Below, one piece after another: positions 4,599 to 51,701 of a stretch of 64,000 nucleotides of DNA. The stretch lies in sequence record MT811961.1; one strand, written 5' to 3'. The notes below the pieces were generated by a model. That model saw nothing but the letters and a program-made list of their open reading frames with translations, was not told the DNA's origin and made no database searches. Positions within the stretch are counted from its first letter, which is position 1; every line of letters starts with the position of its first letter. Both the position numbers and the translations under genes were made by a program.

Positions 4599-5128
4599 GT
4601 AAGGGTGCTAACTGGATCGCGATGGTTCGCGACAAACTAATCGTTCCTGCAAAGATGCTGGCTGTTACACCAGACTGTTCACCAACTTCAAGTATGTTAA
4701 AAACAAAGTATGGTTTGGTGTTTCTACAAACCACAGGTGATCTTTCTTACTTTAACCATATGATGGCAGGTGAGTTAGAAAACATGTGTATGTCAGGTGA
4801 ACATTCGCACTGGGGCTTCTGCCTTATCCGCCCAGATGGCAGTGTCATCTTCCGTGCACTGGATCGTCCTACAAAAGACGAGGTACGTGAAACTCAATAC
4901 ATGTTTTATCCAGATCAAGACGTAACACACCTCCTAGGCCACGGTGATCGCATAGCTGCTTTTAATGCAGTAGCAGAAGAGCCATGTCATCGTATCATCA
5001 AGATCATGCGCAACATGTTTCCAGCCGCTGGTGATTGGCATGTGATCGATATCAAACGCAGTGCTGAAAAACTAAAAGACTGCGAACCACTACCACGTAC
5101 AGTTGGCGTTATCCGCAAGCTGTCTTAA
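4595..5128 (+). CDS. Degenerate Ntn-fold paralog lacking the N-terminal Thr
   Basis: ATGA overlap with 4017 gene; CLIRPDGSVIF vs GLYKRDGRVITF, GHGDRIAA vs GYGTGLLCA, TTGD in the AG position. Confidence 0.45.
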   Translation: MSKGANWIAMVRDKLIVPAKMLAVTPDCSPTSSMLKTKYGLVFLQTTGDLSYFNHMMAGELENMCMSGEHSHWGFCLIRPDGSVIFRALDRPTKDEVRETQYMFYPDQDVTHLLGHGDRIAAFNAVAEEPCHRIIKIMRNMFPAAGDWHVIDIKRSAEKLKDCEPLPRTVGVIRKLS

Positions 5129-7624: not shown

Positions 7625-8188
7625 ATGCAATATCTAACACTGGCAACCATGCCACGCATCATGCAAAACTGGGAACCAAGTGATCAGCTACAGGTAGAGC
7701 GTGATTACATCAAGCTACCGGTCAACGGACCACTAGAGGGTGACATCCTTTATCTTGCTGGCACACCAATGACTGTATTCAGCAATGGTATTTGGACCAT
7801 CATGGACCCCGAGTTCTTTATGACAAAGGGCAACGTGAAAACCACGGTGAAAACAAAGTCAGGCGTTGAATGCAATATTGATTTGCAATTCCCAGATACC
7901 CTGTCCAATGTCATTGAGCTAAACCAGCATGGTGCACTCAAGCTCGTCCATCGTGTGACAGGTAAGATCTTCCGTGCTACCTTTACTGTAGACGACCCTG
8001 AGAAGTTCTGTCCTGAAACATGTACTCGTGTTAACTTCTATCAGGTTTGGGTAATGCTTCAAGAGGTTCACCGCAATGGCGAAGACCAATGGGAGTACAA
8101 TACCAACCCAGTTGCTTACCTTGTAGGCGATAACGAAATCTGTGAATTCTTTGGCAATTGCCAAGTATCTGAATTCGATCTAATCTAA
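7625..8188 (+). CDS. Hypothetical protein
   Basis: 187-aa ORF, GAGGA RBS. Confidence 0.7.
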   Translation: MQYLTLATMPRIMQNWEPSDQLQVERDYIKLPVNGPLEGDILYLAGTPMTVFSNGIWTIMDPEFFMTKGNVKTTVKTKSGVECNIDLQFPDTLSNVIELNQHGALKLVHRVTGKIFRATFTVDDPEKFCPETCTRVNFYQVWVMLQEVHRNGEDQWEYNTNPVAYLVGDNEICEFFGNCQVSEFDLI

Positions 8189-9036: not shown

Positions 9037-9891
9037 ATGCAATTCACTTACAAAGAAACAACTCCACAAGCAGCAGTGCTTATCTCCGGCTTAAACCAGC
9101 TTAACTTTAGCCGTGAGTTCTGGGAAGTATTTGGCGTTGACCATGGCACGAGTGCTGTATTGGATAATGCGGCTACTAACGTTCACATGAACTACGAAAC
9201 GATTGAGATTGCTTTAATCGACATGGTACTTGATCGTTACTATGCTGGTAACAAAGCACCAATCAAATCAATCGAGCTACATTGGTCTTGCGAGCCAAAA
9301 GATCTTGAAGTAATGCTGACGATCTGGGTATTTAAAGAAGGCGGTGGTTCTGAGCACGGTACGTTCCAAATCACTTATATCGATGGTGGTGCTTATGGTG
9401 ACATCCTTTACAACGGTAAGAGCCAATGGAGCTTTACTAGCGTAGATACACCGAAGAACACGATTCTGCCAAACATCGTCGAAGTCGCTGGTGACTCAGT
9501 ACAGTTCACTATGATGCAGCCTGACTTTGTATATCGTGCAAATCAGGACACAGCTGAAACCGAACTGTATGTTACTTACACAGGCAAGCCAGAAGAATTC
9601 ATTGATAAGGCACGCTCGGATGAAGGTCTACCTGAGTTTGTTACGTACTATATGCCTCCAGTACCTGCGATTGATCGCCCTGCTTACAAGCTCGACCGCG
9701 ATACACTTGTAACAATCAATTACAAGTTTTCCGGCAAACTACGCGTACAAGCTCTTGTAGCAGAAGTTAAAGGCAGTGGTCGTCAGAGTGAACCTGAGTA
9801 CATCCTGGATGGCCGCGATGTAACTCTGCGTCATACAGAGACTTTCCGCGGCAAAGATGGAAAACTCACACTGACATTACTTTCAGAATAA
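9037..9891 (+). CDS. Hypothetical protein
   Basis: 284-aa ORF, AGGA RBS. Confidence 0.75.
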   Translation: MQFTYKETTPQAAVLISGLNQLNFSREFWEVFGVDHGTSAVLDNAATNVHMNYETIEIALIDMVLDRYYAGNKAPIKSIELHWSCEPKDLEVMLTIWVFKEGGGSEHGTFQITYIDGGAYGDILYNGKSQWSFTSVDTPKNTILPNIVEVAGDSVQFTMMQPDFVYRANQDTAETELYVTYTGKPEEFIDKARSDEGLPEFVTYYMPPVPAIDRPAYKLDRDTLVTINYKFSGKLRVQALVAEVKGSGRQSEPEYILDGRDVTLRHTETFRGKDGKLTLTLLSE

Positions 9892-36303: not shown

Positions 36304-36309
36304 CTCCTT

Positions 36310-36357
36310 CCCTCTCTCCCTTTCGGGAGAGGGGGTTGTTTCTTTTTCTTTTCTTTT
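36310..36357 (+). terminator. Rho-independent terminator
   Basis: CTCTCCC-tttc-GGGAGAG plus long T tract. Confidence 0.8.
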
Positions 36358-36379
36358 AGTCTCAGCGAGTTTTTATCTC

Positions 36380-36387
36380 TATATTAC
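36380..36387 (+). promoter_or_regulatory. Early promoter core TATATTAC
   Basis: tatctcTATATTACctatttgga. Confidence 0.8.
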
Positions 36388-36423
36388 CTATTTGGATTTA
36401 ATGTACTTAACTAGGAAACCACT

Positions 36424-36831
36424 ATGTCACTTAAACAAAAACTAGCTATCATGTCTCTTTATGCCATTGGCTATATGGGCATTTGTACACTCGGTATGTA
36501 TGCGGCTTTGTTTGTTTTCGACCTATCCGATAATCGTACACTTGCTCTAGCTCTAGGTCATGCTGCTGTTGTTACTGTTGCCTTTTACTTTATTGGCATG
36601 TACATAGCAGATCGTCAGCATCACCATCTGGAAGTAGCACTATGTATAAACATGCTGTCGCTGCCTTTCGTGTTTGTTGCAGTTCTTCATGCATTCACTA
36701 CACATGTCTGTAACTCGACATGGAATACAGAATACAATGGTGCGGTCATGACGATCGGTTTATCATGTGCTTTCATCATTGCCATCACTGGTTCTCGTCT
36801 TCACGAGGCCAAGCATCCTGAGACTAAATAA
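36424..36831 (+). CDS. Four-TM early membrane protein
   Basis: Four hydrophobic segments; GGAAACCACTATG leader. Confidence 0.75.
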   Translation: MSLKQKLAIMSLYAIGYMGICTLGMYAALFVFDLSDNRTLALALGHAAVVTVAFYFIGMYIADRQHHHLEVALCINMLSLPFVFVAVLHAFTTHVCNSTWNTEYNGAVMTIGLSCAFIIAITGSRLHEAKHPETK

Positions 36832-36854
36832 CGATCTCAAGCATTCTTTATCTC

Positions 36855-36862
36855 TATATTAC
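36855..36862 (+). promoter_or_regulatory. Early promoter core TATATTAC
   Basis: tatctcTATATTACctacatgga. Confidence 0.8.
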
Positions 36863-36970
36863 CTACATGGATTAAAACATATAATCCACTAAGTCTATGT
36901 TAAGCCTTAGGGTTTAACGTAGGCTCTTTAACCTAAACTCAATACCATTTTTCTTTTGGAGAATCCAACC

Positions 36971-37381
36971 ATGAAAACGCTACTTAAAACAATTACTTGC
37001 AACGCTAAAACTTTTATCATTAAGAATGTCCTAATCAAGAGCCTAGTAAAGGCAATCCTTAATGTGTTTGCTAACATGATGCTTTTAACAGTTAATGCGC
37101 AACTGGAAGCAAACAAAGCAATTGGTACATCATACAAAGCACGTGTTAAAGCAATGGTTGATTACACGACCTATGTTTGGTTTAACATCTATTCTTTGTT
37201 CTCGGTAATTGCGTTTGCCGCTATTCTTGGCGAAAGTACTGTACTATGGCTACTGGCTATCTCTGCTGTACTATCACTTGTAATGATTGTTGTCCCTGCG
37301 ATCACAATCAATAATAACGTTCGTGAGTCTGCGCAAGAAATCAAAGACCGCGTTGTTTCGTTCAAACACGTACTAGCGTAA
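36971..37381 (+). CDS. Early membrane protein
   Basis: GGAGAATCCAACCATG leader; amphipathic N-terminus, two C-terminal TMs. Confidence 0.75.
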   Translation: MKTLLKTITCNAKTFIIKNVLIKSLVKAILNVFANMMLLTVNAQLEANKAIGTSYKARVKAMVDYTTYVWFNIYSLFSVIAFAAILGESTVLWLLAISAVLSLVMIVVPAITINNNVRESAQEIKDRVVSFKHVLA

Positions 37382-37416
37382 TAACAGAGGGCCGTTACGA
37401 GGGCCCTCGATTATTA
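37379..37416 (+). other. CA/GA-internal-loop stem-loop element, copy A
   Basis: TAATAA-CA-GAGGGCC-gt-TACG-ag-GGCCCTC-GA-TTATTA. Confidence 0.8.
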
Positions 37417-37445
37417 TTCTACCCTAAACTAAAAGGAAACATACC

Positions 37446-37742
37446 ATGGCTACAGTAGCTCCTAAATCACGCATCGTTCATTACATCGTTCTTAAAGTTA
37501 CTGATCTACTTTCTATTGTAGAATCAGGTGGTTTGACTTACTGTAAGATCGGCGGTGAACGCTTGGTTGTTCGCAAAGAACAAACTCCAAACGGCACGGT
37601 TTACAAAGCTATACACTCGGTTGAGTTCAAAACGGATTCAACAGAAGAAGAGCTAAAAGAAATCTTCCGCCCTATCGCAGAATTCATCACGAAGCTTGAA
37701 AACGACGGCTACATCTGCGAGATGATTACAAACAACTACTAA
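37446..37742 (+). CDS. Small early hypothetical protein
   Basis: AAGGA RBS, 98 aa. Confidence 0.7.
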   Translation: MATVAPKSRIVHYIVLKVTDLLSIVESGGLTYCKIGGERLVVRKEQTPNGTVYKAIHSVEFKTDSTEEELKEIFRPIAEFITKLENDGYICEMITNNY

Positions 37743-37789
37743 GTAATATACTCAGAGTCTCTTGCGAGAGGCTCTTATGGATATTATTT
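37741..37789 (+). repeat. 49-bp exact direct repeat copy 1 (contains stem-loop AGAGTCTCT-tgcg-AGAGGCTCT)
   Basis: AAGTAATATACTCAGAGTCTCTTGCGAGAGGCTCTTATGGATATTATTT, identical at 38076-38124. Confidence 0.95.
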
Positions 37790-37811
37790 TAACCAACTAG
37801 AGGATAACATC

Positions 37812-38081
37812 ATGAGCGCACTATTAAACTGGGACCACGAAGTAAACCCAACATCTTTCGGTGACATTCAACTGAATGCTTTGGAAGAACTTAAAAAGCT
37901 TGGTATGCATATTGCACCCAACCGTGACTTCATCGTTTACAATGGTACAAAGGTTGCCTACATGAACGAGGAATCGATCATTGTTTATGACCGCATTGCT
38001 GACGCTGCCACTGGTCCTGCTGGGTACCTTATGGACAAACGCGAAGCAATCATCAACGAATACAATACTTACGTCAAGTAA
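37812..38081 (+). CDS. Small early hypothetical protein bracketed by 49-bp repeats
   Basis: GAGGA RBS, 89 aa. Confidence 0.7.
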   Translation: MSALLNWDHEVNPTSFGDIQLNALEELKKLGMHIAPNRDFIVYNGTKVAYMNEESIIVYDRIADAATGPAGYLMDKREAIINEYNTYVK

Positions 38082-38124
38082 TATACTCAGAGTCTCTTGC
38101 GAGAGGCTCTTATGGATATTATTT
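38076..38124 (+). repeat. 49-bp exact direct repeat copy 2
   Basis: Identical to 37741-37789. Confidence 0.95.
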
Positions 38125-38146
38125 CTAACTAATGGAGAAACCAACC

Positions 38147-38470
38147 ATGAAAACTTTAACTGCACTTCTATCTATCGCTTTCGTTATGTTCGTACAAGAC
38201 GTTAACGCAGCAACCTTCCCAACGATTGCCCTTACTGATGCAATTGTCTGTGAACAACTATGTACTTCTCTGGATGCCGAAGAAAACGCAGCTAATGCAA
38301 AAGCTGAACTTATGCAACAACTTACGCCAGAAAAAGTAGCTAAAGCGCATGCTCTAGCAAACGAAGAAGTTATGCTCTACACACAAATGCTTAACTCACC
38401 GATGGCTGAACTGCGTGTATCTGGCGTACAGTCAATCAACCTTGTACAACAAAAATTTATAAACAACTAA
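38147..38470 (+). CDS. Small secreted/periplasmic early protein
   Basis: Sec signal MKTLTALLSIAFVMFVQDVNA (V-N-A cleavage site); GGAGAAACCAACCATG leader. Confidence 0.7.
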   Translation: MKTLTALLSIAFVMFVQDVNAATFPTIALTDAIVCEQLCTSLDAEENAANAKAELMQQLTPEKVAKAHALANEEVMLYTQMLNSPMAELRVSGVQSINLVQQKFINN

Positions 38471-38519
38471 AACATCACAACAAAGGGTCCTTTAAGAAGG
38501 GCTCTTGATTGTGGTGTTT
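38470..38519 (+). other. CA/GA-internal-loop stem-loop element, copy B
   Basis: AAACATCACAA-CA-AAGGGTCCTT-taag-AAGGGCTCTT-GA-TTGTGGTGTTT. Confidence 0.8.
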
Positions 38520-38539
38520 CACACCAAAAGGATTCTATC

Positions 38540-39553
38540 ATGAAAACTAAACTAATCACTTTCGTTAATGCAGTAAAAACAATGATCAAAAATATCTTTA
38601 CGGCAGTATCAACATTCTTCTTTGGCAGCAAAGAGGAAACATTTGTCGAAGTTGTGACATCTGAATGCTTTGAAGCAGAAGAAGAAATCATCGAAGAAGT
38701 TGTAGTCGAGGAAGTCTTCGAGGCCGTTAAGCCTGGATTTGAGCTGATGGTTGTAGAACAACCAAAGCCACATTCAGACTTTATTTACACTTACATGCTT
38801 GACTATAAAGGCCCTACTCTACAGGACCTTGCAGCTAATGCTCACGACGAGATCATGGGGTACCTAGATTCGGATATCATCCCTCGAGTTTTGATGGATG
38901 CTTGTCTTCACGACATTGCGACCGAAATGCGCACCAAGTATTTTTCTGAGCGCCGGTCACCAATCTGCCGCGGAGACGCAGGATGGGAAGCCACTATCAG
39001 GAATCTTGTTTCTAGTCTATTACCAGAAGATATGTTTGACATTGCAGTCTTTCACTGGGAAGTAGCCAATGAGTTTACTGCTCCCCCTGTTCGTTTCGTT
39101 CCGGTTCAAAAGGGCTTCGAGTTAGTGGTCCGCGAATCATCATTTGCCGATACGGCAGATAGAGCTGCCACGGAGATAGCTATCTGGGACAATGGACCAA
39201 CAGTCGAGCATTTAGAATGGATGTTTGGCAAGGTTGCCCGCTCGTACCACAAAGAGGAAATCCGTAAACTGATTGCGAGGGCCTATGTCTTCAAACATGT
39301 CAATGCGAGATTTCCGAAATATGATTTTTCCACCGAGGGTGTTTCTGATGCATCTTGGTTGGAAATAGAGTCTTCTATAGAGTTCTATGTCAAGTTAATC
39401 GAAGCCAGTGTCTCACAGAAAGAACTGGATGTCAAATTGGCAGAATTCGACGAGGCACATGCACTTCGTGCTGCCATATGTCTAGCACGACACCGCTACG
39501 AATTGCACTGTCTCTTAGAGCAAGAAGAAAAGGTGGTTCAGCTATTTGGCTGA
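38540..39553 (+). CDS. Hypothetical protein with amphipathic N-terminus and acidic stretch
   Basis: MKTKLITFVNAVKTMIKNIF resembles the N-terminus of 36971; EEEIIEEVVVEE. Confidence 0.7.
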   Translation: MKTKLITFVNAVKTMIKNIFTAVSTFFFGSKEETFVEVVTSECFEAEEEIIEEVVVEEVFEAVKPGFELMVVEQPKPHSDFIYTYMLDYKGPTLQDLAANAHDEIMGYLDSDIIPRVLMDACLHDIATEMRTKYFSERRSPICRGDAGWEATIRNLVSSLLPEDMFDIAVFHWEVANEFTAPPVRFVPVQKGFELVVRESSFADTADRAATEIAIWDNGPTVEHLEWMFGKVARSYHKEEIRKLIARAYVFKHVNARFPKYDFSTEGVSDASWLEIESSIEFYVKLIEASVSQKELDVKLAEFDEAHALRAAICLARHRYELHCLLEQEEKVVQLFG

Positions 39554-39576
39554 GCCTCCATTTGGAGAAATAGAAA

Positions 39577-40554
39577 ATGTTTATTACTGAATCAAAAATT
39601 CGTCACTTTATAGAACAAGGTAGACGAGAAGCAAATGCCGAGTATGTCCTGGCACTAGGCAAATTGCGTTCGTCCTTTACTAAAGAATTAATGCAGTTGC
39701 GACAAGACCATCATACATTAGAAACCACAAACGCCGGACTTCGTAATGACCTGGCCTTTGTTCGTGCGGACCTTTGTTCGTTACAGATGGATCAGTTTTT
39801 AAAAGAAGACGAACTGAAAAAGGTCGCTTTACGATGCCAACAGAAAGATGGTACAATCGCAAAGCTAGAAAAAACCAACAGCAAGATAGCTTCTGATCTA
39901 CGCATGGAAAGGTCGGCAAGGAAGGCCGCAGACGAAGAAAACGTTAATGCCGAACAAAAGATTTCCGAGTTAAGCGAACAGGATGACGAAAAGGATTCTA
40001 GACTGAAGGAACTTCAGGCACAGTTTGATAAAACCAGTCCAAACTTAGTTAAAGATACAGTTATCTTTGATACCTGTGCTTTAATCAATGGCCTTAGTGA
40101 CCAGAACAGTGCGGATACACTTGGCGGAGATATCAAATGGATGTTTAATCGCCTCATTGCGACTGGACATGAGATCATAATTCCTAAGTATGTTTACAAG
40201 GAACTTTATGGTTTGTCCAAGCAAACGGGGAATGTTTCTTTGGCGGGATTGGCCAAGGAGATGCTTGAACTAATCAATTCAAGCACACAAATCGCCGTCC
40301 CTGATTTTAAGATCAAATCAGGAAAACAAGAGGCCCTGGCCAAGAAGTATGGCGATCACCATAAAGACATCATGATTCGAGAGTACGTTCTGTCAATCTC
40401 AAAGGAAACTCCCGTTACCTTTGTCACCGATGACAAATTGCTGAGTCGTGACGTAGATGGCTGTTTTGCTACTGCTCTTGATGTGCGTGATCGTACTGGT
40501 GCGGTTCTTTCTGGACGACAACTTTACGAAATCGTTTTAAAGGAAGCAGCTTAA
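39577..40554 (+). CDS. Coiled-coil plus PIN-domain ribonuclease-like protein
   Basis: VIFDTCAL, IIIPKYVYKEL, KDIMI, FVTDDK: four acidic PIN residues; about 150-aa heptad N-terminus. Confidence 0.75.
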   Translation: MFITESKIRHFIEQGRREANAEYVLALGKLRSSFTKELMQLRQDHHTLETTNAGLRNDLAFVRADLCSLQMDQFLKEDELKKVALRCQQKDGTIAKLEKTNSKIASDLRMERSARKAADEENVNAEQKISELSEQDDEKDSRLKELQAQFDKTSPNLVKDTVIFDTCALINGLSDQNSADTLGGDIKWMFNRLIATGHEIIIPKYVYKELYGLSKQTGNVSLAGLAKEMLELINSSTQIAVPDFKIKSGKQEALAKKYGDHHKDIMIREYVLSISKETPVTFVTDDKLLSRDVDGCFATALDVRDRTGAVLSGRQLYEIVLKEAA

Positions 40555-40910
40555 TGCATGTAGATGATTCTGTCACTCCTCTCTGGATGGCGATCATCTT
40601 TTCTCCGGTTGTGTTCGGTTTGATCTATAATCTCTTTAGACCAAAGAAGAAGCAGCCGGAGATGTCAAAGAAAGATCTTGCTATTGCCAGAGATTTTAAA
40701 CTTCAAGCAATCCGCATATTCTGGGATTGTCTATCGGAAGGCGGTTCAATAAGTTCCGCCATATCTTTATTGCATCAGTACCATATCCAACACTGCTGTA
40801 TGTACCCTCATAATCGAGAAATTCAAAATTATCATGTCCAGACCGAAGTAGCCAAACTCACTCGTCGCTGGAATAAATCAAAAGGAAACCACTATGAAAA
40901 CTCTAACTAA
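40554..40910 (+). CDS. Small membrane-anchored protein
   Basis: TM PLWMAIIFSPVVFGLIYNLF then basic stretch. Confidence 0.65.
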   Translation: MHVDDSVTPLWMAIIFSPVVFGLIYNLFRPKKKQPEMSKKDLAIARDFKLQAIRIFWDCLSEGGSISSAISLLHQYHIQHCCMYPHNREIQNYHVQTEVAKLTRRWNKSKGNHYENSN

Positions 40911-41916
40911 ACTAGCTACCCTTGTTCTTGCGGCTACTTCATTCGCAGCTACTGCAAACGTACAAGAACTTAAAGATGCTCTACCTACTTTCTCATACCA
41001 ACACGAAGGCTACACAAAGAAAGAAGTAGAGAAGTTCTACTACACCGCTGCTCTTTGTACAGAAGCTGTTTGTGAGAATGGCAGTGATGACTACGTTGCT
41101 GCTTACCGCTTCAAAGAGTTTGTTGCTAGCCAGCGTCTTATTCGCACTATCTACCAGGATGCGTTCGCTGAGAAAGAAGGTCGCCGTCTTCGCAATCTTG
41201 CTTACCATGGCAAGGACTTTGAAATCCAAGAGAGCCTAAAAGACTTCAATCAAGACTTTGAGGGTGCGATGATCTTTTGGGAGGACGCAGGTTACCTGAT
41301 GGATGAAGGCTATCCAGTAAGTGACTTGATTGGCAAGTCAATCGAAAACCCATTCGGCACTCTTTACAATGCCGCTGTCGAAAACGAATATGCGTACATC
41401 GATGCATTGGAGCGTGTTGTTACTACCCAGCGCAATTCTCTTGTGATGCCTTACCATGTCAAGCTATCTAAAGCAGATGAATACATGTGTCAGTATGACT
41501 ATGCGACAGCAAGCACCGAAGAGAAGAAGGCTAAGAAAGAAGCATGTAATTGGATGCGTGATGCATTTAACTATCGCAAATCTAGCCTGGGTACAAACAA
41601 CGTCAAAATCGAAGTCATTGCGATCAGTAACTACTTCAAGGCTTTCAAGAAACACGACAAAGAAGCATATGAAGCACAGATCGTTAAACTGGCAGAAACA
41701 GTAGTTAAAGCAAAGCAAGCAATTGCAGAAGCTAAATACGCTGAGTTCCTAGCTTATCAAAACAGTGAAGCTGGTCAAGCAGTCATCGCCGAAGAGAAAG
41801 CTAAACAAGAAGCTTACCGCCAAGATCTAGAAGCTAAACGCAAAGCGCGCAAAGCAGCCGAACAATCTGGCAAACGTGCGTTCATCCCAACACAAATCGC
41901 ACAAGAACTTTACTAA
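40894..41916 (+). CDS. Secreted/periplasmic helical protein
   Basis: Signal peptide MKTLTKLATLVLAATSFAATA; GGAAACCACTATG leader. Confidence 0.75.
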   Translation: MKTLTKLATLVLAATSFAATANVQELKDALPTFSYQHEGYTKKEVEKFYYTAALCTEAVCENGSDDYVAAYRFKEFVASQRLIRTIYQDAFAEKEGRRLRNLAYHGKDFEIQESLKDFNQDFEGAMIFWEDAGYLMDEGYPVSDLIGKSIENPFGTLYNAAVENEYAYIDALERVVTTQRNSLVMPYHVKLSKADEYMCQYDYATASTEEKKAKKEACNWMRDAFNYRKSSLGTNNVKIEVIAISNYFKAFKKHDKEAYEAQIVKLAETVVKAKQAIAEAKYAEFLAYQNSEAGQAVIAEEKAKQEAYRQDLEAKRKARKAAEQSGKRAFIPTQIAQELY

Positions 41917-41944
41917 ACATTAACCAACCATAGAGAAACCAACT

Positions 41945-42187
41945 ATGAAGACCCTAATCAGCATTGCCCTAAAGCCTACACAACTAGCATGTATCATGGA
42001 AGAGAAAGATGGCACTCAGTACATCTATATCTGTAATGCTAAATGTCTTGTGCAGAAAACAAGCTCTGATCCTAAACGCCCATCTAAGTTCATGGCGACA
42101 ATTCAGATCTCTGATATTGCAAAGGCAATCAAATACATGGCCAAGTTAAACGAACGTGGTATCGAGCATTACCAGGCTCATTACTAA
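41945..42187 (+). CDS. Small hypothetical protein
   Basis: GAGAAACCAACTATG leader, 80 aa. Confidence 0.65.
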   Translation: MKTLISIALKPTQLACIMEEKDGTQYIYICNAKCLVQKTSSDPKRPSKFMATIQISDIAKAIKYMAKLNERGIEHYQAHY

Positions 42188-42192
42188 CAGTC

Positions 42193-42228
42193 ACTCACAA
42201 AGGGTTCTTACGAGAGCCCTTGATGAGT
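42193..42228 (+). other. CA/GA-internal-loop stem-loop element, copy C
   Basis: ACTCA-CA-AAGGGTTCT-tacg-AGAGCCCTT-GA-TGAGT. Confidence 0.8.
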
Positions 42229-42266
42229 CGCTGTGACTCGTAGATTAACTAACGGAGAATCCAACC

Positions 42267-42611
42267 ATGTCTACTCAAAACAAACTACGCGTAATCAAAA
42301 ACACTTTCCCTCGCATTCAATACTTCAACGAAACAACGGAAATCAACGCAGCATTGTTTAACTCTATCCGTCACTATGTGACAAAAGAACTGGGCGAAGC
42401 CTACGACGTAATCCTGCACGAAGGTACAGAATGGCTTGTATCTGATCACGTAGCAGTTCGCTTCCCATACGACATCACAGTCAATGATGTCAACCTAGTA
42501 ACCTCATGCGGTGGCTTTAAAGTCTACATCGGCGGCCAAGGTGGTACAGGTAAACGTGACGAGATTCGTCGCTACATTCAAAACATCGTCGTGCAAACTT
42601 TTGCCGACTAA
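42267..42611 (+). CDS. Small hypothetical protein
   Basis: GGAGAATCCAACCATG leader. Confidence 0.7.
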   Translation: MSTQNKLRVIKNTFPRIQYFNETTEINAALFNSIRHYVTKELGEAYDVILHEGTEWLVSDHVAVRFPYDITVNDVNLVTSCGGFKVYIGGQGGTGKRDEIRRYIQNIVVQTFAD

Positions 42612-42643
42612 CAACCAAACAAAATAAAAGAAGGAATTTTATT

Positions 42644-43000
42644 ATGAGTATTTTCGGCGCAGTATTATCAGTAGTTATTCTTGTTATCTTTGTAGTTGCA
42701 TTTATGCTTAAAGCAACATCACTAAATGACAAAGCATCGACCAACACAAAGACAGACCTAACTCTAGCATACAACAAAGCAGTAAGCATTGGTATCTGGG
42801 TAGGTAATGTACATGCACGCGATCTTCAAAAAGTTTTGAATCGCTGTAAATGTCTAAACAAAAGCCACATGGAATATGAGCTGCGTCGTGTACTTGTAAC
42901 TAGCCTTTGTAAAAACGAAGGTTTGTTTATTACAGGTGCAGACTTTGATACTGCTCTTGTTTCAGCTTACAACACAGTCCGTGCTCGTCACGGACTTTAA
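42644..43000 (+). CDS. Small membrane-anchored protein
   Basis: TM IFGAVLSVVILVIFVVAFML; AAGGA RBS. Confidence 0.7.
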   Translation: MSIFGAVLSVVILVIFVVAFMLKATSLNDKASTNTKTDLTLAYNKAVSIGIWVGNVHARDLQKVLNRCKCLNKSHMEYELRRVLVTSLCKNEGLFITGADFDTALVSAYNTVRARHGL

Positions 43001-43027
43001 CCCCAGCCAACCGAGGAGAAACCAACC

Positions 43028-43687
43028 ATGGCTAAACGAATGAAAATCTACATCGGCGACAAAGCCTTCTACCGTGTACGTGTTCACAACGATACCGAGA
43101 AGCTTCATACTGAACATGCACTTCCAGTTCGTCGTGCAATCAGTCTTCTCAGAAACACAGTTGTACCTGAAGAGGTAGCTACTACAGTAGAGCTTTCCGA
43201 CTTAGCTCGCCGTTGTGAGGATTACCGCGATGTCTGTAAAGGTCAATTCATGACCATCAATGCGGCACGTCTATTTGAAAGACAACTAACCTCAGTAGAA
43301 GATATCGTCATTCTAGAAAAGTCTCTAGCAATGACTATTTCTCATATCCGCAATATTGACAATGGCTATCCGTTATATGTCTGCTTCCACGATGAGTCAT
43401 ATTTCTTTGTATCCAAGTCAAAGCTAGTACCAGAAAACTTTAACTGTCGCGATCCATTGGCAGTTCATCACAACGGGCTAGAACAACTGGTTAACTCACT
43501 GATGAAAATCTACAATAAAGGCAAGCATTGTGGGACGCCACTTGCACAGTCTTCTCTTGACTTCATCTTAAAGTTAGTTAGTTACATACAAGATAAGATT
43601 GACGATGGTCAAACTTATACCCCAATCCAAGTTCGTCCTGAATATCTACAGCGACGAGAATTTCAAAAACAGCTAAATGCAGCGTAG
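43028..43687 (+). CDS. Hypothetical protein, NDxxK paralog family member 1
   Basis: VHNDTEKL and LTSVEDIVIL motifs shared with 45066 and 45726. Confidence 0.65.
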   Translation: MAKRMKIYIGDKAFYRVRVHNDTEKLHTEHALPVRRAISLLRNTVVPEEVATTVELSDLARRCEDYRDVCKGQFMTINAARLFERQLTSVEDIVILEKSLAMTISHIRNIDNGYPLYVCFHDESYFFVSKSKLVPENFNCRDPLAVHHNGLEQLVNSLMKIYNKGKHCGTPLAQSSLDFILKLVSYIQDKIDDGQTYTPIQVRPEYLQRREFQKQLNAA

Positions 43688-43726
43688 ACTACAGGAGATC
43701 TTCTAGCGAGGGTCTCCGATAATCTA
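43685..43726 (+). other. CA/GA-internal-loop stem-loop element, copy D
   Basis: TAGACTA-CA-GGAGATCTTC-tagc-GAGGGTCTCC-GA-TAATCTA. Confidence 0.8.
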
Positions 43727-43749
43727 TGTTATCATTGTGTCTATATCTC

Positions 43750-43757
43750 TATATAAC
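43750..43757 (+). promoter_or_regulatory. Early promoter core TATATAAC
   Basis: tatctcTATATAACcaatgtgaa. Confidence 0.8.
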
Positions 43758-43798
43758 CAATGTGAATCTATCCACCTGAAAGATAAAAGGAAACCACT

Positions 43799-43927
43799 AT
43801 GTCTTTTGAAACTACTTACGAACTAGAACAAGACATCACAAGCATCTTTGAAGAAGACGGCATCTACGATGACATCTCTAGTGATCTTCAATACGATGAC
43901 ATTCTTTACGCAGTACAAGAGGATTAA
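43799..43927 (+). CDS. 42-aa hyper-acidic peptide (missed by the ORF track)
   Basis: MSFETTYELEQDITSIFEEDGIYDDISSDLQYDDILYAVQED*; AAGGAAACCACTATG leader; stop 2 nt before the next ATG. Confidence 0.8.
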   Translation: MSFETTYELEQDITSIFEEDGIYDDISSDLQYDDILYAVQED

Positions 43928-43929
43928 CA

Positions 43930-44670
43930 ATGTGCCATCCTGTGTTTCCAGAAACAATGACACGTGATCTTTTAGAAGATGCAATGGCCATTGTCTATGG
44001 ACAAGAACTAAAACTAGCCTCGAAGCGCACGTTCTTTAAACGACATGAAAACGCCGAGGTTACTTGTCGCTGGCATGGAGACAAAACCGTTTCCATGGAG
44101 CGCCTCATTTACAGCATGGATGACAAACCTTCTCATGTCTGTGATGATTGCAATAAGTCAACAAAGCAAGGTCAGAATCTAACTGCAACAAAGATTCCAC
44201 CTGCTCTTGTTTATCAACGAGTAAACGGATGGGAAGTTGAATATCTCGACGATCGTCCTTTTATCATGGCACAGCCAAGATTGTTTCGTTGTCCTAAGCA
44301 TGGACTATTCCGTCAAGAACCTAACTTTATACTTGATCGAATTAAACGCAACGATACAACAGCATGCTCATGTCCTGTCTGTGCACTGCTGTACAACGAT
44401 CTTGTAGATCGCAAATACAAAAGCTGGCAGTCTAAGATCGAAAAGAATGTCGGCAAGAACAACATGGGCCAATTTCATAGTGACAATCCGAACTTTAAAT
44501 TCTTGGTATCGGGTCCTATGTTAGCAACCAAACGTTGTCCTAAACACGGCAAATATGACTTGACTCTTACTGAACTTATTCACGGTAAGACTTGTCCTAA
44601 ATGCACAACCGAGACTGGCCTACTTGGCTGGTTTAACACAACTTACCACTGGCGCAACAAATTCGCATAA
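43930..44670 (+). CDS. Multi-Zn-ribbon protein (CPKHG repeats, DUF723-like)
   Basis: CRWHG...CDDC, CPKHG...CPVC, CPKHG...CPKC. Confidence 0.6.
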   Translation: MCHPVFPETMTRDLLEDAMAIVYGQELKLASKRTFFKRHENAEVTCRWHGDKTVSMERLIYSMDDKPSHVCDDCNKSTKQGQNLTATKIPPALVYQRVNGWEVEYLDDRPFIMAQPRLFRCPKHGLFRQEPNFILDRIKRNDTTACSCPVCALLYNDLVDRKYKSWQSKIEKNVGKNNMGQFHSDNPNFKFLVSGPMLATKRCPKHGKYDLTLTELIHGKTCPKCTTETGLLGWFNTTYHWRNKFA

Positions 44671-44684
44671 TCGGAGAAACCATC

Positions 44685-44999
44685 ATGACTAAAGCAACAG
44701 ATCTAGTAGCAATCAAATACATTGGCCGTTACATCAAATGGAATGGCAACCAAACTGAAGTTCGTCCTGTAATGAAGACAAAGGATCGCGAAACACGTGA
44801 TCCTAAGACAGACAAGGTCACAGTTATTCCTGGTGTTCCATTGATCTCACTCGATGGTCCTTACACACGTCAAGAAGCAATGGACTTCCTAGCAATGCGT
44901 GCAAACGAAAACGCTAACTCTCCTAGCACATGGGAAATCGTAGAGCTATCTGCTATTCCTTTGCAAACTGACGTGACTGAGAACAACTGGCGCGGCTAA
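44685..44999 (+). CDS. Small hypothetical protein
   Basis: GGAGAAACCATCATG leader. Confidence 0.7.
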   Translation: MTKATDLVAIKYIGRYIKWNGNQTEVRPVMKTKDRETRDPKTDKVTVIPGVPLISLDGPYTRQEAMDFLAMRANENANSPSTWEIVELSAIPLQTDVTENNWRG

Positions 45000-45007
45000 A
45001 CCGAATT

Positions 45008-45050
45008 GCAGTCTCGCTTCGGCGAGGCTGCTTAATCATATTCTTTATTT
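45008..45050 (+). terminator. Probable terminator (UUCG loop)
   Basis: GCAGTCTCGC-ttcg-GCGAGGCTGC plus T-rich tail. Confidence 0.6.
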
Positions 45051-45065
45051 TTGGAAATCACTAAA

Positions 45066-45716
45066 ATGGCTATAGTAAAAAGACGTAGAGCAATTAACGA
45101 CTATATGCGCGATGGCATCGTAATCACAAAGATCTACTTTCAAAACGACTCTGAGAAAACTACCCGCAAATACAAAGACGATGGCCTTACTGGGTATATT
45201 GCCGAACTCGTATCAAAACATGTTGCTGTTAAAGGCCATCATGTGATCACAAGTACTGAAATTGAAGCGTGGGTGAAAAAGAATTACCCGCACCTCGGAC
45301 GCAAAGAAGTTACTCTTGTTAATCTTGCCTGTCGTATGAACAAAGAGATTACTTCTCTTGATGACTTTATTCTTGTTCCTCGTGGTACAATGGACTCTGA
45401 ACTAAAAGTCTTTCCAAGAGGGGACATTCCTCCATATGTCTTTCAGGACGAGCGAGGTTATTATCGCCTGAATAAAACAAAGATTATCGGTTCGATGTAT
45501 CATGGTAATAGTAAATGGGATTGTCATACACATGGCATGAAATACTTTATCCGTCATTTAGAAGACCTCGTTTACAAGGTCAATCTAACGCCACATGCTC
45601 GCTTGGGTATGATTCGATTCATCGAGTATCTTTGTGACCTACAAGAGAAGAAGCAATACTGGACTGGTCGCATCCATCGCTACGCGGCTATCAAGCACCA
45701 ACTAAAAGCACTATAG
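45066..45716 (+). CDS. Basic hypothetical protein, NDxxK paralog family member 2
   Basis: YFQNDSEKT and ITSLDDFILV motifs. Confidence 0.65.
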   Translation: MAIVKRRRAINDYMRDGIVITKIYFQNDSEKTTRKYKDDGLTGYIAELVSKHVAVKGHHVITSTEIEAWVKKNYPHLGRKEVTLVNLACRMNKEITSLDDFILVPRGTMDSELKVFPRGDIPPYVFQDERGYYRLNKTKIIGSMYHGNSKWDCHTHGMKYFIRHLEDLVYKVNLTPHARLGMIRFIEYLCDLQEKKQYWTGRIHRYAAIKHQLKAL

Positions 45717-45725
45717 GAAACCACT

Positions 45726-46355
45726 ATGTCTGTAATCAGAAACACCGAAACAAAAGTACTACTTGGCAATACTGTTCGCAAAGGCTACTTCAATAACGAC
45801 TCTGGCAAGACTCAAGCCCACCTAATGAAAACCGAACCGCTGGTAATGCGCATCGCAGAAGCCATCAAGAAACTAGGTTGGCTTGAAGGCACACATGAAC
45901 ACAAGTACAGCGAGATAAAAGAGTGGATTAACTTAAACTACTCTCATATCACCTGTACAAAAGATGTTCGTGTTAACTGTTGGATCATGCGTTTCAACCT
46001 CGTACCATCTCGACTCGATCACCTTATTGTTTTAAACAAAGCGGATTCTTATGCGTTCCGTCGTACGACTACACGTAGTAAAGAAGGCCTATATCGCCAA
46101 GACAGAAACTCTGATGTGTTTAATGTACAACCATCGGCAATCTTTCCGAAGCGCATCGTTACCACCAACCATGACGAAGGTTACGAGCGATGCGTATTGA
46201 TGTTGCGTAAATGGTACAAGTGCAAAATGATCGAAGCACCATGCCATCATAACCGCATGGTATTTGAAAACCTAGCGCGCCTGATCAAGAACTTGGTTAA
46301 TGCCAGAATGCCTATTCGAGCAGAAACCGCAGAGTGGCGCTATATTCCGAAATAA
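45726..46355 (+). CDS. Basic hypothetical protein, NDxxK paralog family member 3
   Basis: YFNNDSGKT and SRLDHLIVL motifs; GGAAACCACTATG leader. Confidence 0.65.
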   Translation: MSVIRNTETKVLLGNTVRKGYFNNDSGKTQAHLMKTEPLVMRIAEAIKKLGWLEGTHEHKYSEIKEWINLNYSHITCTKDVRVNCWIMRFNLVPSRLDHLIVLNKADSYAFRRTTTRSKEGLYRQDRNSDVFNVQPSAIFPKRIVTTNHDEGYERCVLMLRKWYKCKMIEAPCHHNRMVFENLARLIKNLVNARMPIRAETAEWRYIPK

Positions 46356-46369
46356 TAAGGACGGATAAT

Positions 46370-46528
46370 TTGTTAGCAATAGGTTCTTTAATGATCCTTT
46401 GTGTTGCCGTAGGTGGTGTTTTGTTAGCCAACCTACGCATCACTCCAGCACCAAAGCAAAAGCCTGTTGTCGTTAAGCAGGCTAAGTCTAACCCGACTAA
46501 GTACAAACGTATAGACATATTCTGTTAA
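46370..46528 (+). CDS. Small membrane protein (TTG start)
   Basis: AAGGA upstream of TTG 46370; TM then basic tail. Confidence 0.5.
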   Translation: MLAIGSLMILCVAVGGVLLANLRITPAPKQKPVVVKQAKSNPTKYKRIDIFC

Positions 46529-46569
46529 ATCGTTTGAATCTTTTAACTATTAATTACCAGGAGTCCATT

Positions 46570-46869
46570 ATGGAAGCTCAAGTTTACATTATCGTAGGTC
46601 TTGTATTTGCCCTACTCTTTGCATGTTGTGTTGCACGATACTTTTGGATGCAAGCAAAAGAAACTCAAATTACTAACGATGGCCTAGTGCTAGAACTGGG
46701 TCAGGTTGGTACCGAACTGACTGCAATTAAATCTGATCTGAGTTCGATTCATAAACAAGCCAGATTGCTACTGGTCGAACGCCACAAACTGAAAGCTCGA
46801 TTGCCTCGCATCCTGGGCAAAGAAAAAGCACATCAGGTAATGCAAGATTATCCTGTGCTCTTTAAGTAA
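46570..46869 (+). CDS. TM plus coiled-coil small protein
   Basis: GGAG RBS before ATG 46570; VYIIVGLVFALLFACCVA. Confidence 0.65.
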   Translation: MEAQVYIIVGLVFALLFACCVARYFWMQAKETQITNDGLVLELGQVGTELTAIKSDLSSIHKQARLLLVERHKLKARLPRILGKEKAHQVMQDYPVLFK

Positions 46870-46875
46870 CATACG

Positions 46876-46922
46876 CCTGTCGTCCTTCGGGACGGCAGGT
46901 AGTTCTCTTATTTTTCTTTTTT
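46876..46922 (+). terminator. Rho-independent terminator (UUCG loop)
   Basis: CCTGTCGTCC-ttcg-GGACGGCAGG plus T tracts. Confidence 0.8.
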
Positions 46923-48476: not shown

Positions 48477-48477
48477 A

Positions 48478-49593
48478 ATGCAACTCGAAGATATTTTTGA
48501 TATGGAGTCATACTTTGACGCTGCTCCAGAATACACAGCAGAAGAAATCACGGCGGCTTTAAAAGAACTCCAATCCGACATGGTCTATCTGAGCAACATG
48601 GAAATGCCAGAACTGCTAGAAATCCAAGGTGCTAAAAACGAAATATCTAGCCTAGAAAGCACCCTTGAGGCAGTGGAACATTTCACAAGCCTCGACAGTG
48701 AATCAATGGAAGCGGACGCCTACCAAATCGCATGTGCGGCTTTCCATAGTGTTGTTCCAGAAGAAGTATGGAACAAAGCAGAAGGCAAGGAAGGTTTTGT
48801 TAAGCGCGTTAAAGATCGCATCGCAAAACTTATTGCAAAAATCAAAGCTGCAATTTCTGGCATTGTTAAGCGCTTCCGTGCCAAGGGCAAGAAAGTTAAC
48901 AAGCAGATGATGGTCGTTGCTGTTGGTCTGCGCAACGGAGATCTTGTTTGCAAAGAAGTAAAACCTTCTGAAAAGCTTGCTCCTCTTTATAATCTAGGTG
49001 GCTTTGACTTAAAGGACTACAAAGTTAAGCGTGTTGCACGAGAAGCAATCCCCCTATCGGACATGGAGGCGACAGTAAACGCGATTCCTGGACTAGCAGC
49101 AAACTACAGCAAGATTTCAGTCAAAGGACTAGTTGACTCCAAAGCAGCTAAACAACTCGGTAAAGTTTGGCTAGAAGAAATGAGCAAGATTTCTGTTAAA
49201 ACTCAAACTATTGAAAGTGAAACCCACACGGACGTCTTTTATGCCTACTTGACTGACGATGGCTGTGCTATTGTTACAGAGAGCAGTGCAGCGCTACTTC
49301 CTACTACGATGGTGTCGCGCCCAGAAGAGAAATCCAAAGGCATTGATCTATCTGGCAAAGAATCGCAAGTCGCAAGGATGGCAGAAGCCATTGGTCGTTC
49401 TTGGTTATCGTTGGATAAAACTAATCTCGAGGTCGACAAATGGGCCGAGAGTGAAGGTAACTCAACCGACGGTTTGGACACTAAATGGGTAATGCAGCTT
49501 ATCAGTGGTGTCGACAAGATGATTCAGTTACAGTTGCGTTTCTTGGGTGCCACTGCACTTCTTATCAGTACTGGTACCGAGAAGAAAAAATAA
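48478..49593 (+). CDS. phiKZ-like internal head protein paralog 2
   Basis: Acidic propeptide with S/A/G-x-E sites (SLE, SME, GKE); VPE motif then GFVKRVKDRIAKLIAKIKAAISGIVKRF. Confidence 0.7.
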   Translation: MQLEDIFDMESYFDAAPEYTAEEITAALKELQSDMVYLSNMEMPELLEIQGAKNEISSLESTLEAVEHFTSLDSESMEADAYQIACAAFHSVVPEEVWNKAEGKEGFVKRVKDRIAKLIAKIKAAISGIVKRFRAKGKKVNKQMMVVAVGLRNGDLVCKEVKPSEKLAPLYNLGGFDLKDYKVKRVAREAIPLSDMEATVNAIPGLAANYSKISVKGLVDSKAAKQLGKVWLEEMSKISVKTQTIESETHTDVFYAYLTDDGCAIVTESSAALLPTTMVSRPEEKSKGIDLSGKESQVARMAEAIGRSWLSLDKTNLEVDKWAESEGNSTDGLDTKWVMQLISGVDKMIQLQLRFLGATALLISTGTEKKK

Positions 49594-49643: not shown

Positions 49644-51701
49644 ATGAAAAAGATTACTTTAAGTGAGTTATTCGAAGCGGATGTACTACCGCAAGAAGAA
49701 GACGAAGAAGCTCCTGGGATATCCATTATCCTTCCTGACGAACCAGTTACGGAAGATGCCGAATCACTAGCCCTGTTTTCTGCGCTATCGGAACTCAACA
49801 TCCTTGAAGCTGCCTTTGATGCTGCCGAGGTCTTCTTGTCACACACTGGTGACGAAGAAAGCCGCAAGGTGGCAGAGGCACGCTTCTATGCATCTGTTCC
49901 AGAAACGATCGTTTTGAAAGCAGGTGGTGCTTCTGGCTTTAAAGAAAAGGCTGCTGTTAAGATCAAACAGGCTATTGCGAAAGTTAAGGCCGCGATCACA
50001 AATGTACTAACTAAGTTTGTTGGCGACAGCCGAGTCAAACAACTCCGTTTAGAGTCAGCCCGCAAAGGAGTAGCTAATGGTACTTACTTTACTGGCGTTG
50101 TTCCGCTAAACAAATCACATCATGCTTTTGCCACTGATCTTTCTGGCGGACGTTCTGCAACAGTCGATTTCATGAACTCGAAACAAATTGCTGCTACCTT
50201 GGAAGCTGCATTGGATTCGATCAACAACCTACCGCGTGCGCTATCCTCTTTAGGGAAACTAGATAATGCGAACTATACAAAAGACCTAGGAAAAATTCTT
50301 ACGGATCTTTATGGCTTCGGTGCCACAGTAGACAGCCGCGCAATGTCATTTGGTTTCACGAAAGACCAAAGCATGGCACTGAGTGTAATTATGTCTGGCG
50401 GAATCTCTCCAAAGATGGTTAATGCCAAAGCAGCAATAGTTAAAGCTGGTCGTGTAGATATCGATAAGGGTGATTTCGAAAAAGGTTCAGAAGCCGTCAT
50501 TAAAGGCTTTGCTGCAATGCCTAAGGTACAGCGTGCAATTGCACAGTACAACACACAGCTAAATGAAGAGAATGCAAAAACACAATCAGCGATTGCTCGC
50601 ATTCTTGGCATTACTGTAGCAATGTACAAAGAAACCCTCAACGGCGGTTACCGTGTACTCGGCGGCTCCATCAAGAAAACAAACAAAGACCAAGGAACAA
50701 ACATGTCTTTCCTATATCCAGAACAAATCGAAATTGCTCAACTAGAGCTTGAGTTAGAGGCAATGCAGAAAGCAGAGCAAGAAGCAATCACTTTTGAAGC
50801 ATCAGCCAAAACAGAAGCAGACGAAGCTCGCTTTATGTACCACGTACCAGAAGAACTAGTAATGGCGGCTGGCGGCAAACAAAGCTTTATCAAGCGCGCT
50901 GGTGCGGCAATTGCAAACAAGATCCAACAGATCCTTAAAGCAATCAAAGATATGTTCTCTCGTATCTTTGGTAAAGCCGCGACAAAGAAAGCTGTTGATG
51001 AAGCAGACAAAGTCGGCAAGAAGGCAGAAGCTACTGCGAAGAAAGTAGAAGAAGAGATCAACAAAGACCCACGCAAGATGGCGATGGATCTCAATATTCC
51101 AATCGCAATTGAAGCTTCAGTACTTGCTAATGGTAAAGAAATTATTCATCCATTGGAAGTCGTCAAGAAAACAACGGCATTGGTCGAGACAGCACAAAGT
51201 CTCATGGCCGGTATCATCCAGTTTGGTCTTGGTACACCACCTAAGGCTGTTGATGAAATTTCAGATACCGTTAAGCGCGGATTTGAAGCCGTTGGGATGA
51301 AGGGTGACATGATGGAGATCCGCCCATGGGCTGGAACCAATAGTGGCTTCCGTGCCAAGGTGGATGAATCCAATCCATACAAGCTTTCTTTCCACTGGTT
51401 TGAAGATGTACCAAAAGTCAAGAACAAGGTAGTTCGAAACGTTTCTTTGGAAGACTTGGAAAAATACTCTGCTTCTGCACAGCAGTCGATTGTTAAATCT
51501 GGTGACTTGGCTAGAAACATCGACGAACTCATGAAGGCAGACTTTTCTAAACTCAACAAAGAAAACCGTGATTTAGCGATGAGTCAACTTGCACTTGGTC
51601 GTGACATTGCACTTCTGGTTAGACGCATGAACCAGTCGTCTATCAAGGCATGTTCCGCCCTTGTCAAAGAAGCTGAAAAGAAACTCAAAGAACAGAAATA
51701 A
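49644..51701 (+). CDS. Fused double internal head protein (two propeptide-plus-helix units)
   Basis: Unit 1 VPETIVLKAGGASGFKEKAAVKIKQAIAKVK; unit 2 starts at in-frame ATG 50703 with its own AAGGA RBS, VPEELVMAAGGKQSFIKRAGAAIANKIQQILK; start may be 49629. Confidence 0.7.
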   Translation: MKKITLSELFEADVLPQEEDEEAPGISIILPDEPVTEDAESLALFSALSELNILEAAFDAAEVFLSHTGDEESRKVAEARFYASVPETIVLKAGGASGFKEKAAVKIKQAIAKVKAAITNVLTKFVGDSRVKQLRLESARKGVANGTYFTGVVPLNKSHHAFATDLSGGRSATVDFMNSKQIAATLEAALDSINNLPRALSSLGKLDNANYTKDLGKILTDLYGFGATVDSRAMSFGFTKDQSMALSVIMSGGISPKMVNAKAAIVKAGRVDIDKGDFEKGSEAVIKGFAAMPKVQRAIAQYNTQLNEENAKTQSAIARILGITVAMYKETLNGGYRVLGGSIKKTNKDQGTNMSFLYPEQIEIAQLELELEAMQKAEQEAITFEASAKTEADEARFMYHVPEELVMAAGGKQSFIKRAGAAIANKIQQILKAIKDMFSRIFGKAATKKAVDEADKVGKKAEATAKKVEEEINKDPRKMAMDLNIPIAIEASVLANGKEIIHPLEVVKKTTALVETAQSLMAGIIQFGLGTPPKAVDEISDTVKRGFEAVGMKGDMMEIRPWAGTNSGFRAKVDESNPYKLSFHWFEDVPKVKNKVVRNVSLEDLEKYSASAQQSIVKSGDLARNIDELMKADFSKLNKENRDLAMSQLALGRDIALLVRRMNQSSIKACSALVKEAEKKLKEQK

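Follow-up and report, generated by a model that had tools for sequence, protein, structure and literature searches.

The 64,000-nucleotide (nt) stretch of DNA analyzed here (the window) is the last 64 kb of the genome of Vibrio phage vB_pir03 (hereafter pir03; MT811961.1, 286,284 bp), to which it is identical in sequence, and a window position equals the record position minus 222,284. It contains six intergenic hairpins that are real, probably functional and of the same kind as the ribonuclease III (RNase III) processing hairpins of phages. Two of them are T7-type hairpins with an ACUC / UAUG(A/G) internal loop (type B), and the other four have CA opposite GA in the loop (type A), a form that, judged from sequence, is a new and apparently widespread variant of these hairpins with predicted cleavage. 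It is probable that the hairpins serve as mRNA processing and stabilizing signals of the T7/T3 kind, read by the RNase III of the host. Such a role would place a classical device of T7, the RNase III cutting of polycistronic early RNA into stable messages, in a Vibrio jumbo phage of the phiKZ-like group, whose members are commonly deemed insulated from the nucleic-acid enzymes of the host, and the CA/GA loop type, which recurs across unrelated lineages, could improve the annotation of phage transcript boundaries.

Architecture and conservation of the hairpins

Two covariance models were used: R1, the family model, built from the elements of pir03 and its relative Vibrio phage C-ZP2022, and R2, built from five T7 sites only (R0.3, R0.5, R1.1, R4.7 and R18.5). 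The six hairpins of the window are as follows (E, expectation value).

37378-37417, plus strand: E1, type A; lower stem 37378-37384 / 37411-37417, CA 37385-37386, upper stem 37387-37395 / 37400-37408, GA 37409-37410; 53.6 bits
37741-37789, plus strand: repeat 1, type B; upper stem 37754-37762 / 37767-37775; 37.9 bits with R2, E 2e-8
38076-38124, plus strand: repeat 2, type B; exact 49-nt copy of repeat 1; 37.9 bits with R2
38470-38519, plus strand: E2, type A; 11-bp lower stem, CA 38481-38482, upper stem 38483-38492 / 38497-38506, GA 38507-38508; 37.4 bits
42193-42228, plus strand: E3, type A; outer stem 42187-42191 / 42230-42234, lower stem 42193-42197 / 42224-42228, CA 42198-42199, upper stem 42200-42208 / 42213-42221, GA 42222-42223; 49.5 bits
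43685-43726, plus strand: E4, type A; outer stem 43681-43730, CA 43692-43693, upper stem 43694-43703 / 43708-43717, GA 43718-43719; 50 bits

Folding confirms the plan that a preliminary description of this DNA, made from the letters of the window, had proposed for E1 to E4, namely a lower stem, a 2 × 2 internal loop (CA in its 5′ strand, GA in its 3′ strand), an upper stem of 9-10 bp and a 4-nt loop. The lower stems begin inside the stop codon of the upstream gene or at most six bases from it, in line with the earlier statement that the elements sit right after a stop codon; that of E1 takes in the stop codon of the gene at 36971-37381, and that of E4 contains the stop codon at 43685-43687. 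The helices total 21-23 bp in E2 to E4, in keeping with the approximately two helical turns of the T7/T3 class, and are shorter, at 18 bp, in E1, which has a single G·G mismatch beside its loop. The elements had been described as different in sequence, but they align at a mean column identity of 61% and share the upper-stem base RRGG...CCYY together with a 3′ GAU. The two 49-nt repeats had been credited with the same upper-stem style; they do belong to the family, but their internal loop, which is 1 × 3 in the fold, reads ACUC / UAUGG when aligned to T7 and is not CA/GA.

An unbiased enumeration of hairpins covered the window and positions 1-50000 of pir03. In a mechanical scan of the window, the strongest plus-strand hairpins of the form "lower stem / 2 × 2 loop / upper stem" were the CA/GA ones. 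CA and GA flank 4 of the 170 plus-strand hairpins whose stems reach 8 bp or more (0.7 expected), and three of these four are E2, E3 and E4; E1 was missed in this count because of its G·G mismatch. With the family model, the plus strand scored 37-57 bits and the minus strand 13-18 bits; the fold is specific to the sense strand because of its frequent G-U pairs. No U-tract follows E1 to E4, again in line with the preliminary description, and the U-rich tail of E1 is the 3′ arm of its own lower stem. Folding also bore out the C(UUCG)G hairpins with U-tracts at many other intergenic regions of the window; the hallmark of an intrinsic terminator, a G+C-rich hairpin directly followed by a U-tract, is not found in the six hairpins.

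A covariance-model scan of the whole 286-kb genome with R1, an approach that the preliminary description had proposed, yielded nine sites in pir03, every one of them intergenic and in the sense orientation, and the family extends to unrelated phages (see below). The sites outside the window lie at record positions 46687-46729 and 147621-147662 (both CA/GA) and 151949-151992 (type B). All three type B members in pir03, namely the two repeats and the 151949 site, have A(A/U)ACUC followed by a 9-bp stem with a UNCG loop, the return strand of the stem and UAUG(A/G).

Among 50,697 phage records, C-ZP2022 is the sole close relative of pir03 (~83% identity over the aligned parts). Its ortholog of E1 has one base changed, beside the loop, and its orthologs of E3 and E4 have changes in the loop only, against a divergence of ~17% elsewhere; repeats 1 and 2 show one and two base differences, and E2 is absent. 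Conservation of CA/GA in orthologous sites was one of the points raised earlier; the loop is kept in those of C-ZP2022 and also in unrelated phages. In vB_VpaM_sm033 (sm033), a distant relative of pir03, types A and B stand behind a run of small genes; since these flanking genes are not homologous to those of pir03, a comparison of orthologous sites is not possible, and DNA-level similarity between the two hairpin regions is confined to the hairpins. No more relatives of a flanking 219-amino-acid (aa) protein were found in IMG/VR or the JGI metagenomes.

Over 27 sites, 93.7% of the pair cells hold standard pairs, compared with 70.6% in shuffles, in an alignment that was fitted to the model and thereby favors the structure. 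Fourteen of 17 pairs are altered on both sides. None of 500 shuffles attained the values observed, and pairing falls to 44-53% in a slid control in which the partner is shifted by 1-3 columns. CA/GA is invariant in all type A rows, in the pattern-derived rows by construction. The earlier claim that the stems covary around a fixed CA/GA is thus upheld.

The T7/T3 class and the occurrence of the CA/GA form

The RNase III sites of T7 (V01146) were located by means of cleavage positions that we take to be those of Dunn and Studier (1983), and these coordinates fall exactly after the U of UAU|GAU. The folded regions of R0.3, R0.5, R1.1, R4.7 and R18.5 read A(A/U)ACUC - AAGG...CCUU - UAUGAU, and the same loop is present in most of the ten stem-loops annotated as "RNase III recognition site" in the T3 record (AJ318471). 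Repeats 1 and 2, the site at record position 151949 and five sites of sm033 carry the T7/T3 flanks around different, covarying stems; in the alignment of type B with T7, the CTC and TG of the loop strands are invariant and the stems differ. R2, run on both strands of the pir03 genome, retrieved only the three type B sites (37.5-37.9 bits, E ~2e-8); it also matched the type B orthologs of C-ZP2022 and four sm033 sites, and there was no other significant match in the pir03 genome or in the loci taken from C-ZP2022 and sm033. With R1, T7 gave twelve matches; R0.5, R4.7, R6.5, R1.1, R1, R18.5, R0.3 and R1.3 are among them and account for all of the top six. In addition, the sm033 site at position 6045 of locus L003 has lower-stem flanks in common with T3 R4.7. 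By all sequence criteria available, type B can be assigned to the T7/T3-type RNase III signals. The likeness to T7 RNase III sites is therefore stronger than the preliminary description had claimed, the repeats being retrieved by a model built from T7 only. Because type B carries the T7/T3 loop and is found by that model, part of this hairpin family has been described for decades. The view that the element was undescribed holds for the CA/GA form, of which no description was found in literature searches made without most subscription journals.

The pir03 hairpins resemble the T7 and T3 signals in being irregular hairpins with a lower stem, a small internal loop, an upper stem of 9-11 bp of the form AAGG/RRGG...CCUU/CYY and a 3′ GAU, and in lying between genes within polycistronic transcripts. 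They differ in their carrier: pir03, a Vibrio phage of the phiKZ-like jumbo group, is unrelated to T7 and has RNA polymerases of its own; several split RNA polymerase β and β′ genes, a hallmark of phiKZ-like jumbo phages, are present in its genome. Furthermore, four of the six window elements have the symmetric 2 × 2 CA/GA loop, none of which was seen in T7 or T3, and the terminal loops of the pir03 hairpins are mostly UNCG-like and not GNRA-like. Palindromes like the T7 RNase III site have been described in the T7-like vibriophage VIB04, where, as DNA, they trigger the Lamassu DdmABC defense and are accompanied by palindromes unlike the T7 site (Robins et al., 2024; PMC11707656). VIB04 and pir03 are both Vibrio phages with T7-type hairpins, VIB04 being a podovirus; the CA/GA form was set against VIB04 by description only. 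Given that such palindromes trigger DdmABC in vibriophages, the pir03 hairpins may be liabilities that shape host range.

Several features tie type A to type B. E1 and the type A site of sm033 use the lower stem GUAAUAA / UUAUUAU, as in the type B copies, and the two types share a purine-rich RRGG / CYY stem base and the 3′ GAU. The loops of the T7 and T3 sites are themselves variable (4 × 5, 3 × 3, 2 × 3 or none), and thus a 2 × 2 loop is within the range of the class; the ACUC / UAUGA(U) loop is also departed from by T7 R1 and R1.3 and by T3 R1, R1.1 and R1.3. Moreover, pir03, sm033, the T7-like Vibrio phage phi-A318 and the SP6-like contigs L150 and L180 each carry both types. In phi-A318, type A is located at 9591-9641, and the T7-type matches at 1916-1959 and 38714-38753 are weak (E 0.12-0.14) but have ACUC / UAUGA flanks. 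In L150 (5532-5601 and 385-427) and L180 (6346-6388), a CA/GA hairpin comes right after an SP6-like promoter, and a T7-type ACUC/UAUGA site lies a few kb away. The pairing of SP6-like promoter and hairpin in these two contigs mirrors the pairs of T7 promoter and RNase III site.

Beyond these phages, the Vibrio phage ICP1 has two type A sites (7138-7189 and 7775-7826) 600 nt apart in its early region, and a contig that resembles an Aeromonas phage also has two; the second site of each was not selected by the search pattern. One ICP1 hairpin (L129, 7138-7189, minus strand) shares sequence with the annotated sigma-70 promoter Porf17, TTGACA falling in the loop of the hairpin and TATATT in its 3′ lower stem. 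The minor E. coli promoters B, C and E of T7 also adjoin RNase III sites. A first pattern scan of IMG/VR was too loose and returned mostly chance matches, from which only model-confirmed contigs with a second, pattern-independent site were kept. A narrower pattern gave at least 120 stretches, 55 of 80 being confirmed by the model, and the lower stems of its matches, on which the pattern sets no constraint, covary. Among the matches listed are many prophage-like contigs of ~45-52 kb (L132 and ~45 similar loci, L130-L209), in which the space from a stop codon to the ribosome-binding site that follows is taken up by a near-identical CA/GA hairpin whose loop is UUCG. BLAST was applied to one of these contigs, L132, which is closest to Morganella and Providencia phages and in which the hairpin (4796-4837) follows the major tail protein gene; phage lambda has no such hairpin, its V and G genes being 15 nt apart.

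Transcript context, proposed processing and competing explanations

The promoter-like and terminator-like features that bear on the transcription of the hairpins are listed below.

36850-36863, plus strand: promoter-like motif ATCTCTATATTACC; all six hairpins belong to the transcription unit that it heads
3589, 9896, 13894, 32867, 36375, 36850, 43745 and 52484, plus strand: window copies of the motif ATCTCTATATWACC
~5513 in L003, and ~5578, 6050 and 10715 in L002: further copies of ATCTCTATATWACC
36308-36335, 45008-45031 and 46875-46900: strong U-tract terminators
45008-45031, plus strand: G+C-rich C(UUCG)G hairpin with a T-rich tail, the first such downstream of the hairpins

The eight plus-strand copies of the 14-nt motif in the window (0.64 expected) are always located upstream of plus-strand genes, and the motif is conserved in C-ZP2022 and sm033. 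It resembles what we take to be the core of the phiKZ early promoter, and it appears to serve this phiKZ-like clade as an early promoter, for the virion RNA polymerase. The hairpin at 45008-45031 is likely to be the end of the hairpin-bearing transcription unit; no other G+C-rich U-tract terminator comparable to it was found in a scan of 36335-46875, in which the weaker matches, of 5-9 pairs, sit in coding sequence, and the match at 37387-37408 is E1. All six hairpins of the window lie between 36850 and 45008, and most of the cistrons downstream have no copy of the promoter motif. Since neither a strong U-tract terminator nor a promoter separates most of the cistrons, the polymerase must read through the hairpins, a behavior that suits processing sites and speaks against terminators.

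A perfect 15-bp hairpin with a UUAG loop (36892-36925) sits in the 5′ leader, shortly after the promoter motif at 36850, and one of its G-U pairs is A-U in C-ZP2022. It had been described as a weaker hairpin with the same upper-stem style; it is a plain stem that the family model does not recognize, and its candidate roles are those of a 5′ stabilizer or of another target of a double-strand RNase.

A feasible model is that an early transcript would start at the promoter motif near 36850 and run for ~8 kb without a strong terminator, with each hairpin forming where a cistron ends, at its stop codon. The internal loop, being small, would admit just one catalytic site of RNase III, so that the 3′ side would be nicked at or beside the conserved GA. 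For type B, homology to T7 predicts cuts within UAU|GA, at 37778|37779 and 38113|38114, and for type A the cut would be expected at or beside GA. The upstream cistron would then retain a 3′ hairpin that may shield it from exonucleases and so stabilize its mRNA, and the downstream cistron would begin with a short 5′-monophosphate leader bearing its ribosome-binding site. That internal loops restrict RNase III to one strand and leave stabilizing 3′ hairpins is established (PMC3867540), and by analogy we infer that Vibrio RNase III may cleave these sites. The presence of the same motif in unrelated lineages (jumbo phages, ICP1, T7-like and SP6-like phages and siphoviral prophages) points to a reader supplied by the host, most simply a conserved host enzyme. 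There was no evidence of a phage RNase III in a weak test, in which the back-translated signature E[FY]xGD occurred in three pir03 genes, none of them with a Pfam domain.

Several observations weigh against processing by host RNase III. Phages of the phiKZ-like group keep much of their nucleic-acid metabolism out of reach of host enzymes, and neither dependence on RNase III nor RNase III sites were reported for phiKZ-like or jumbo phages in the literature found, again with most subscription journals outside its scope. The total helix is short, 17-18 bp, in E1 and in the site at record position 46687. In addition, R2 gave only 12-16 bits on type A, which is not significant, and the membership of type A in the class therefore rests on its architecture, its shared flanks and its co-occurrence with type B. 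Some of the single matches in IMG/VR were also picked by a pattern into which part of the motif is already built, and at least the match in the Firmicutes-like phage L082 may be due to chance.

It is also conceivable, though we consider it rather doubtful, that the CA/GA hairpin is a distinct, widespread mRNA signal of gammaproteobacterial phages, in which the fixed tandem C·A / A·G mismatch gives an outcome unlike that of the T7-type loop; the hairpin may, for example, be bound without cleavage, be cut at another position or be read by a factor other than RNase III. If this were true, a phiKZ-like phage would still depend on a host-read code to shape its early mRNAs, although it otherwise does without host transcription. 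An unlikely explanation is that the hairpins are passive barriers to 3′-exonucleases, or sites that RNase III binds only, which would stabilize the upstream cistron after cleavage elsewhere (e.g., by RNase E) and would themselves stay uncut. The location at stop codons suits such barriers, as does the hairpin after the highly expressed major tail gene in the Morganella/Providencia-like prophage contigs, a classic place for differential mRNA stabilization, and the 2 × 2 loop of type A might stack into a continuous helix. However, a passive role leaves unexplained both the invariance of CA/GA and ACUC/UAUGA beside freely covarying stems and the identity of type B with the RNase III-cleaved sites of T7 and T3. 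Stable hairpins after stop codons, the U-rich GAUUAUUAUU that follows E1 and the recovery of E1 in the terminator scan could be taken to indicate terminators, pause sites or attenuators for the multisubunit RNA polymerases of the phage. This is very unlikely, given the many canonical terminators of the window, composed of a G+C-rich hairpin and a U-tract, the missing promoter motif of the downstream cistrons and the occurrence of the same hairpins in phages that are transcribed by the host RNA polymerase or by T7/SP6-type RNA polymerases.

The remaining explanations turn on gene content. A 2.2-kb block specific to pir03 (38373-40540), which is absent from C-ZP2022 and stands in place of ~100 nt, comprises the last part of one gene, the hairpin E2, an ORFan of 337 aa and a gene for a PIN_4 protein of 325 aa; it is the sole gene-content difference from C-ZP2022 in the region, and its junctions (~38372 and 40540) are both within coding sequence. 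We consider it improbable that the hairpins act, whether primarily or incidentally, as recombination hot-spots that shuffle early-gene cassettes. Such shuffling is suggested by repeats 1 and 2, which are exact 49-nt copies flanking one small gene, by near-identical hairpins after non-homologous genes in pir03 and sm033, whose regions are similar in DNA at the hairpins only, and by the precedent of the PeSL elements of T4-like phages, in which a terminator-like stem-loop is fused to a sigma-70 early promoter and marks indel junctions (PMC2839356, PMC4122927). The PeSL elements are like the pir03 hairpins in being conserved intergenic stem-loops that recur among small early genes in a large phage genome, where unrelated genes are flanked by copies that are nearly the same. 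Nevertheless, E4 is the only hairpin beside a promoter motif, the copy at 43745 starting 15 nt after it, and hence the PeSL composite is missing; the gene between the exact repeats is kept in C-ZP2022, and the indel does not end at a hairpin. The PeSL type of cassette boundary was thus rejected, and the idea that genes are gained or lost at the elements, which had been raised in the preliminary description, gains no support here from junctions that are both in coding sequence. The same holds for the suggestion of an integron attC-like recombinase substrate: the elements have no RYYYAAC/GTTRRRY core sites, contain only a symmetric 2 × 2 mismatch and are 36-50 nt long. No integrase is named among the annotated products at record positions 1-222400 and 256084-269284 (222401-256083 and 269285-286284 were outside this check). 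By analogy, the exact repeats and the hairpins shared by unrelated genes may leave room for occasional recombination at the sites.

The PIN protein encoded at 39577-40554 (PIN_4 domain, E 1.4e-9) had been put forward as a possible reader and lies in the same operon as the hairpins. By tblastn, it has no relatives in any other of the 50,697 phage records, all other hairpin carriers included; C-ZP2022, sm033, ICP1 and phi-A318 keep the hairpins, and the PIN protein is present in pir03 alone. It was rejected as a shared reader, in particular since C-ZP2022 has no such gene and yet retains the hairpins, and a phage-encoded nuclease of this sort is largely refuted and scarcely credible.

Other observations in the pir03 genome

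Searches of Rfam returned no family for the hairpins, either at gathering thresholds over the whole window or with E up to 1 in 36800-43900, and there are no tRNAs in the window. At 49831-49861 on the minus strand, the eukaryotic iron response element II of Rfam gave a borderline match (31.5 bits against a gathering threshold of 30, E 0.042) that is almost certainly due to chance. Outside the window, a TROVE (Ro60-like) gene (L005 12725-19000, pir03 record ~62.6-68.9 kb) is followed by ~2.5 kb in which only tiny open reading frames (ORFs) of ~30 aa are annotated; this stretch contains no tRNA, no Rfam family (Y RNA included) and no clear repeats. Between called genes of the window, 782 nt (48477-49258) contain no ATG-initiated ORF in a crude gene call, and they probably represent a gene with another start codon or a frameshift. 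Finally, a single annotated ORF of 19.25 kb, encoding a hypothetical protein of ~6,400 aa, spans L007 18904-38157 (pir03 record 168604-187857).

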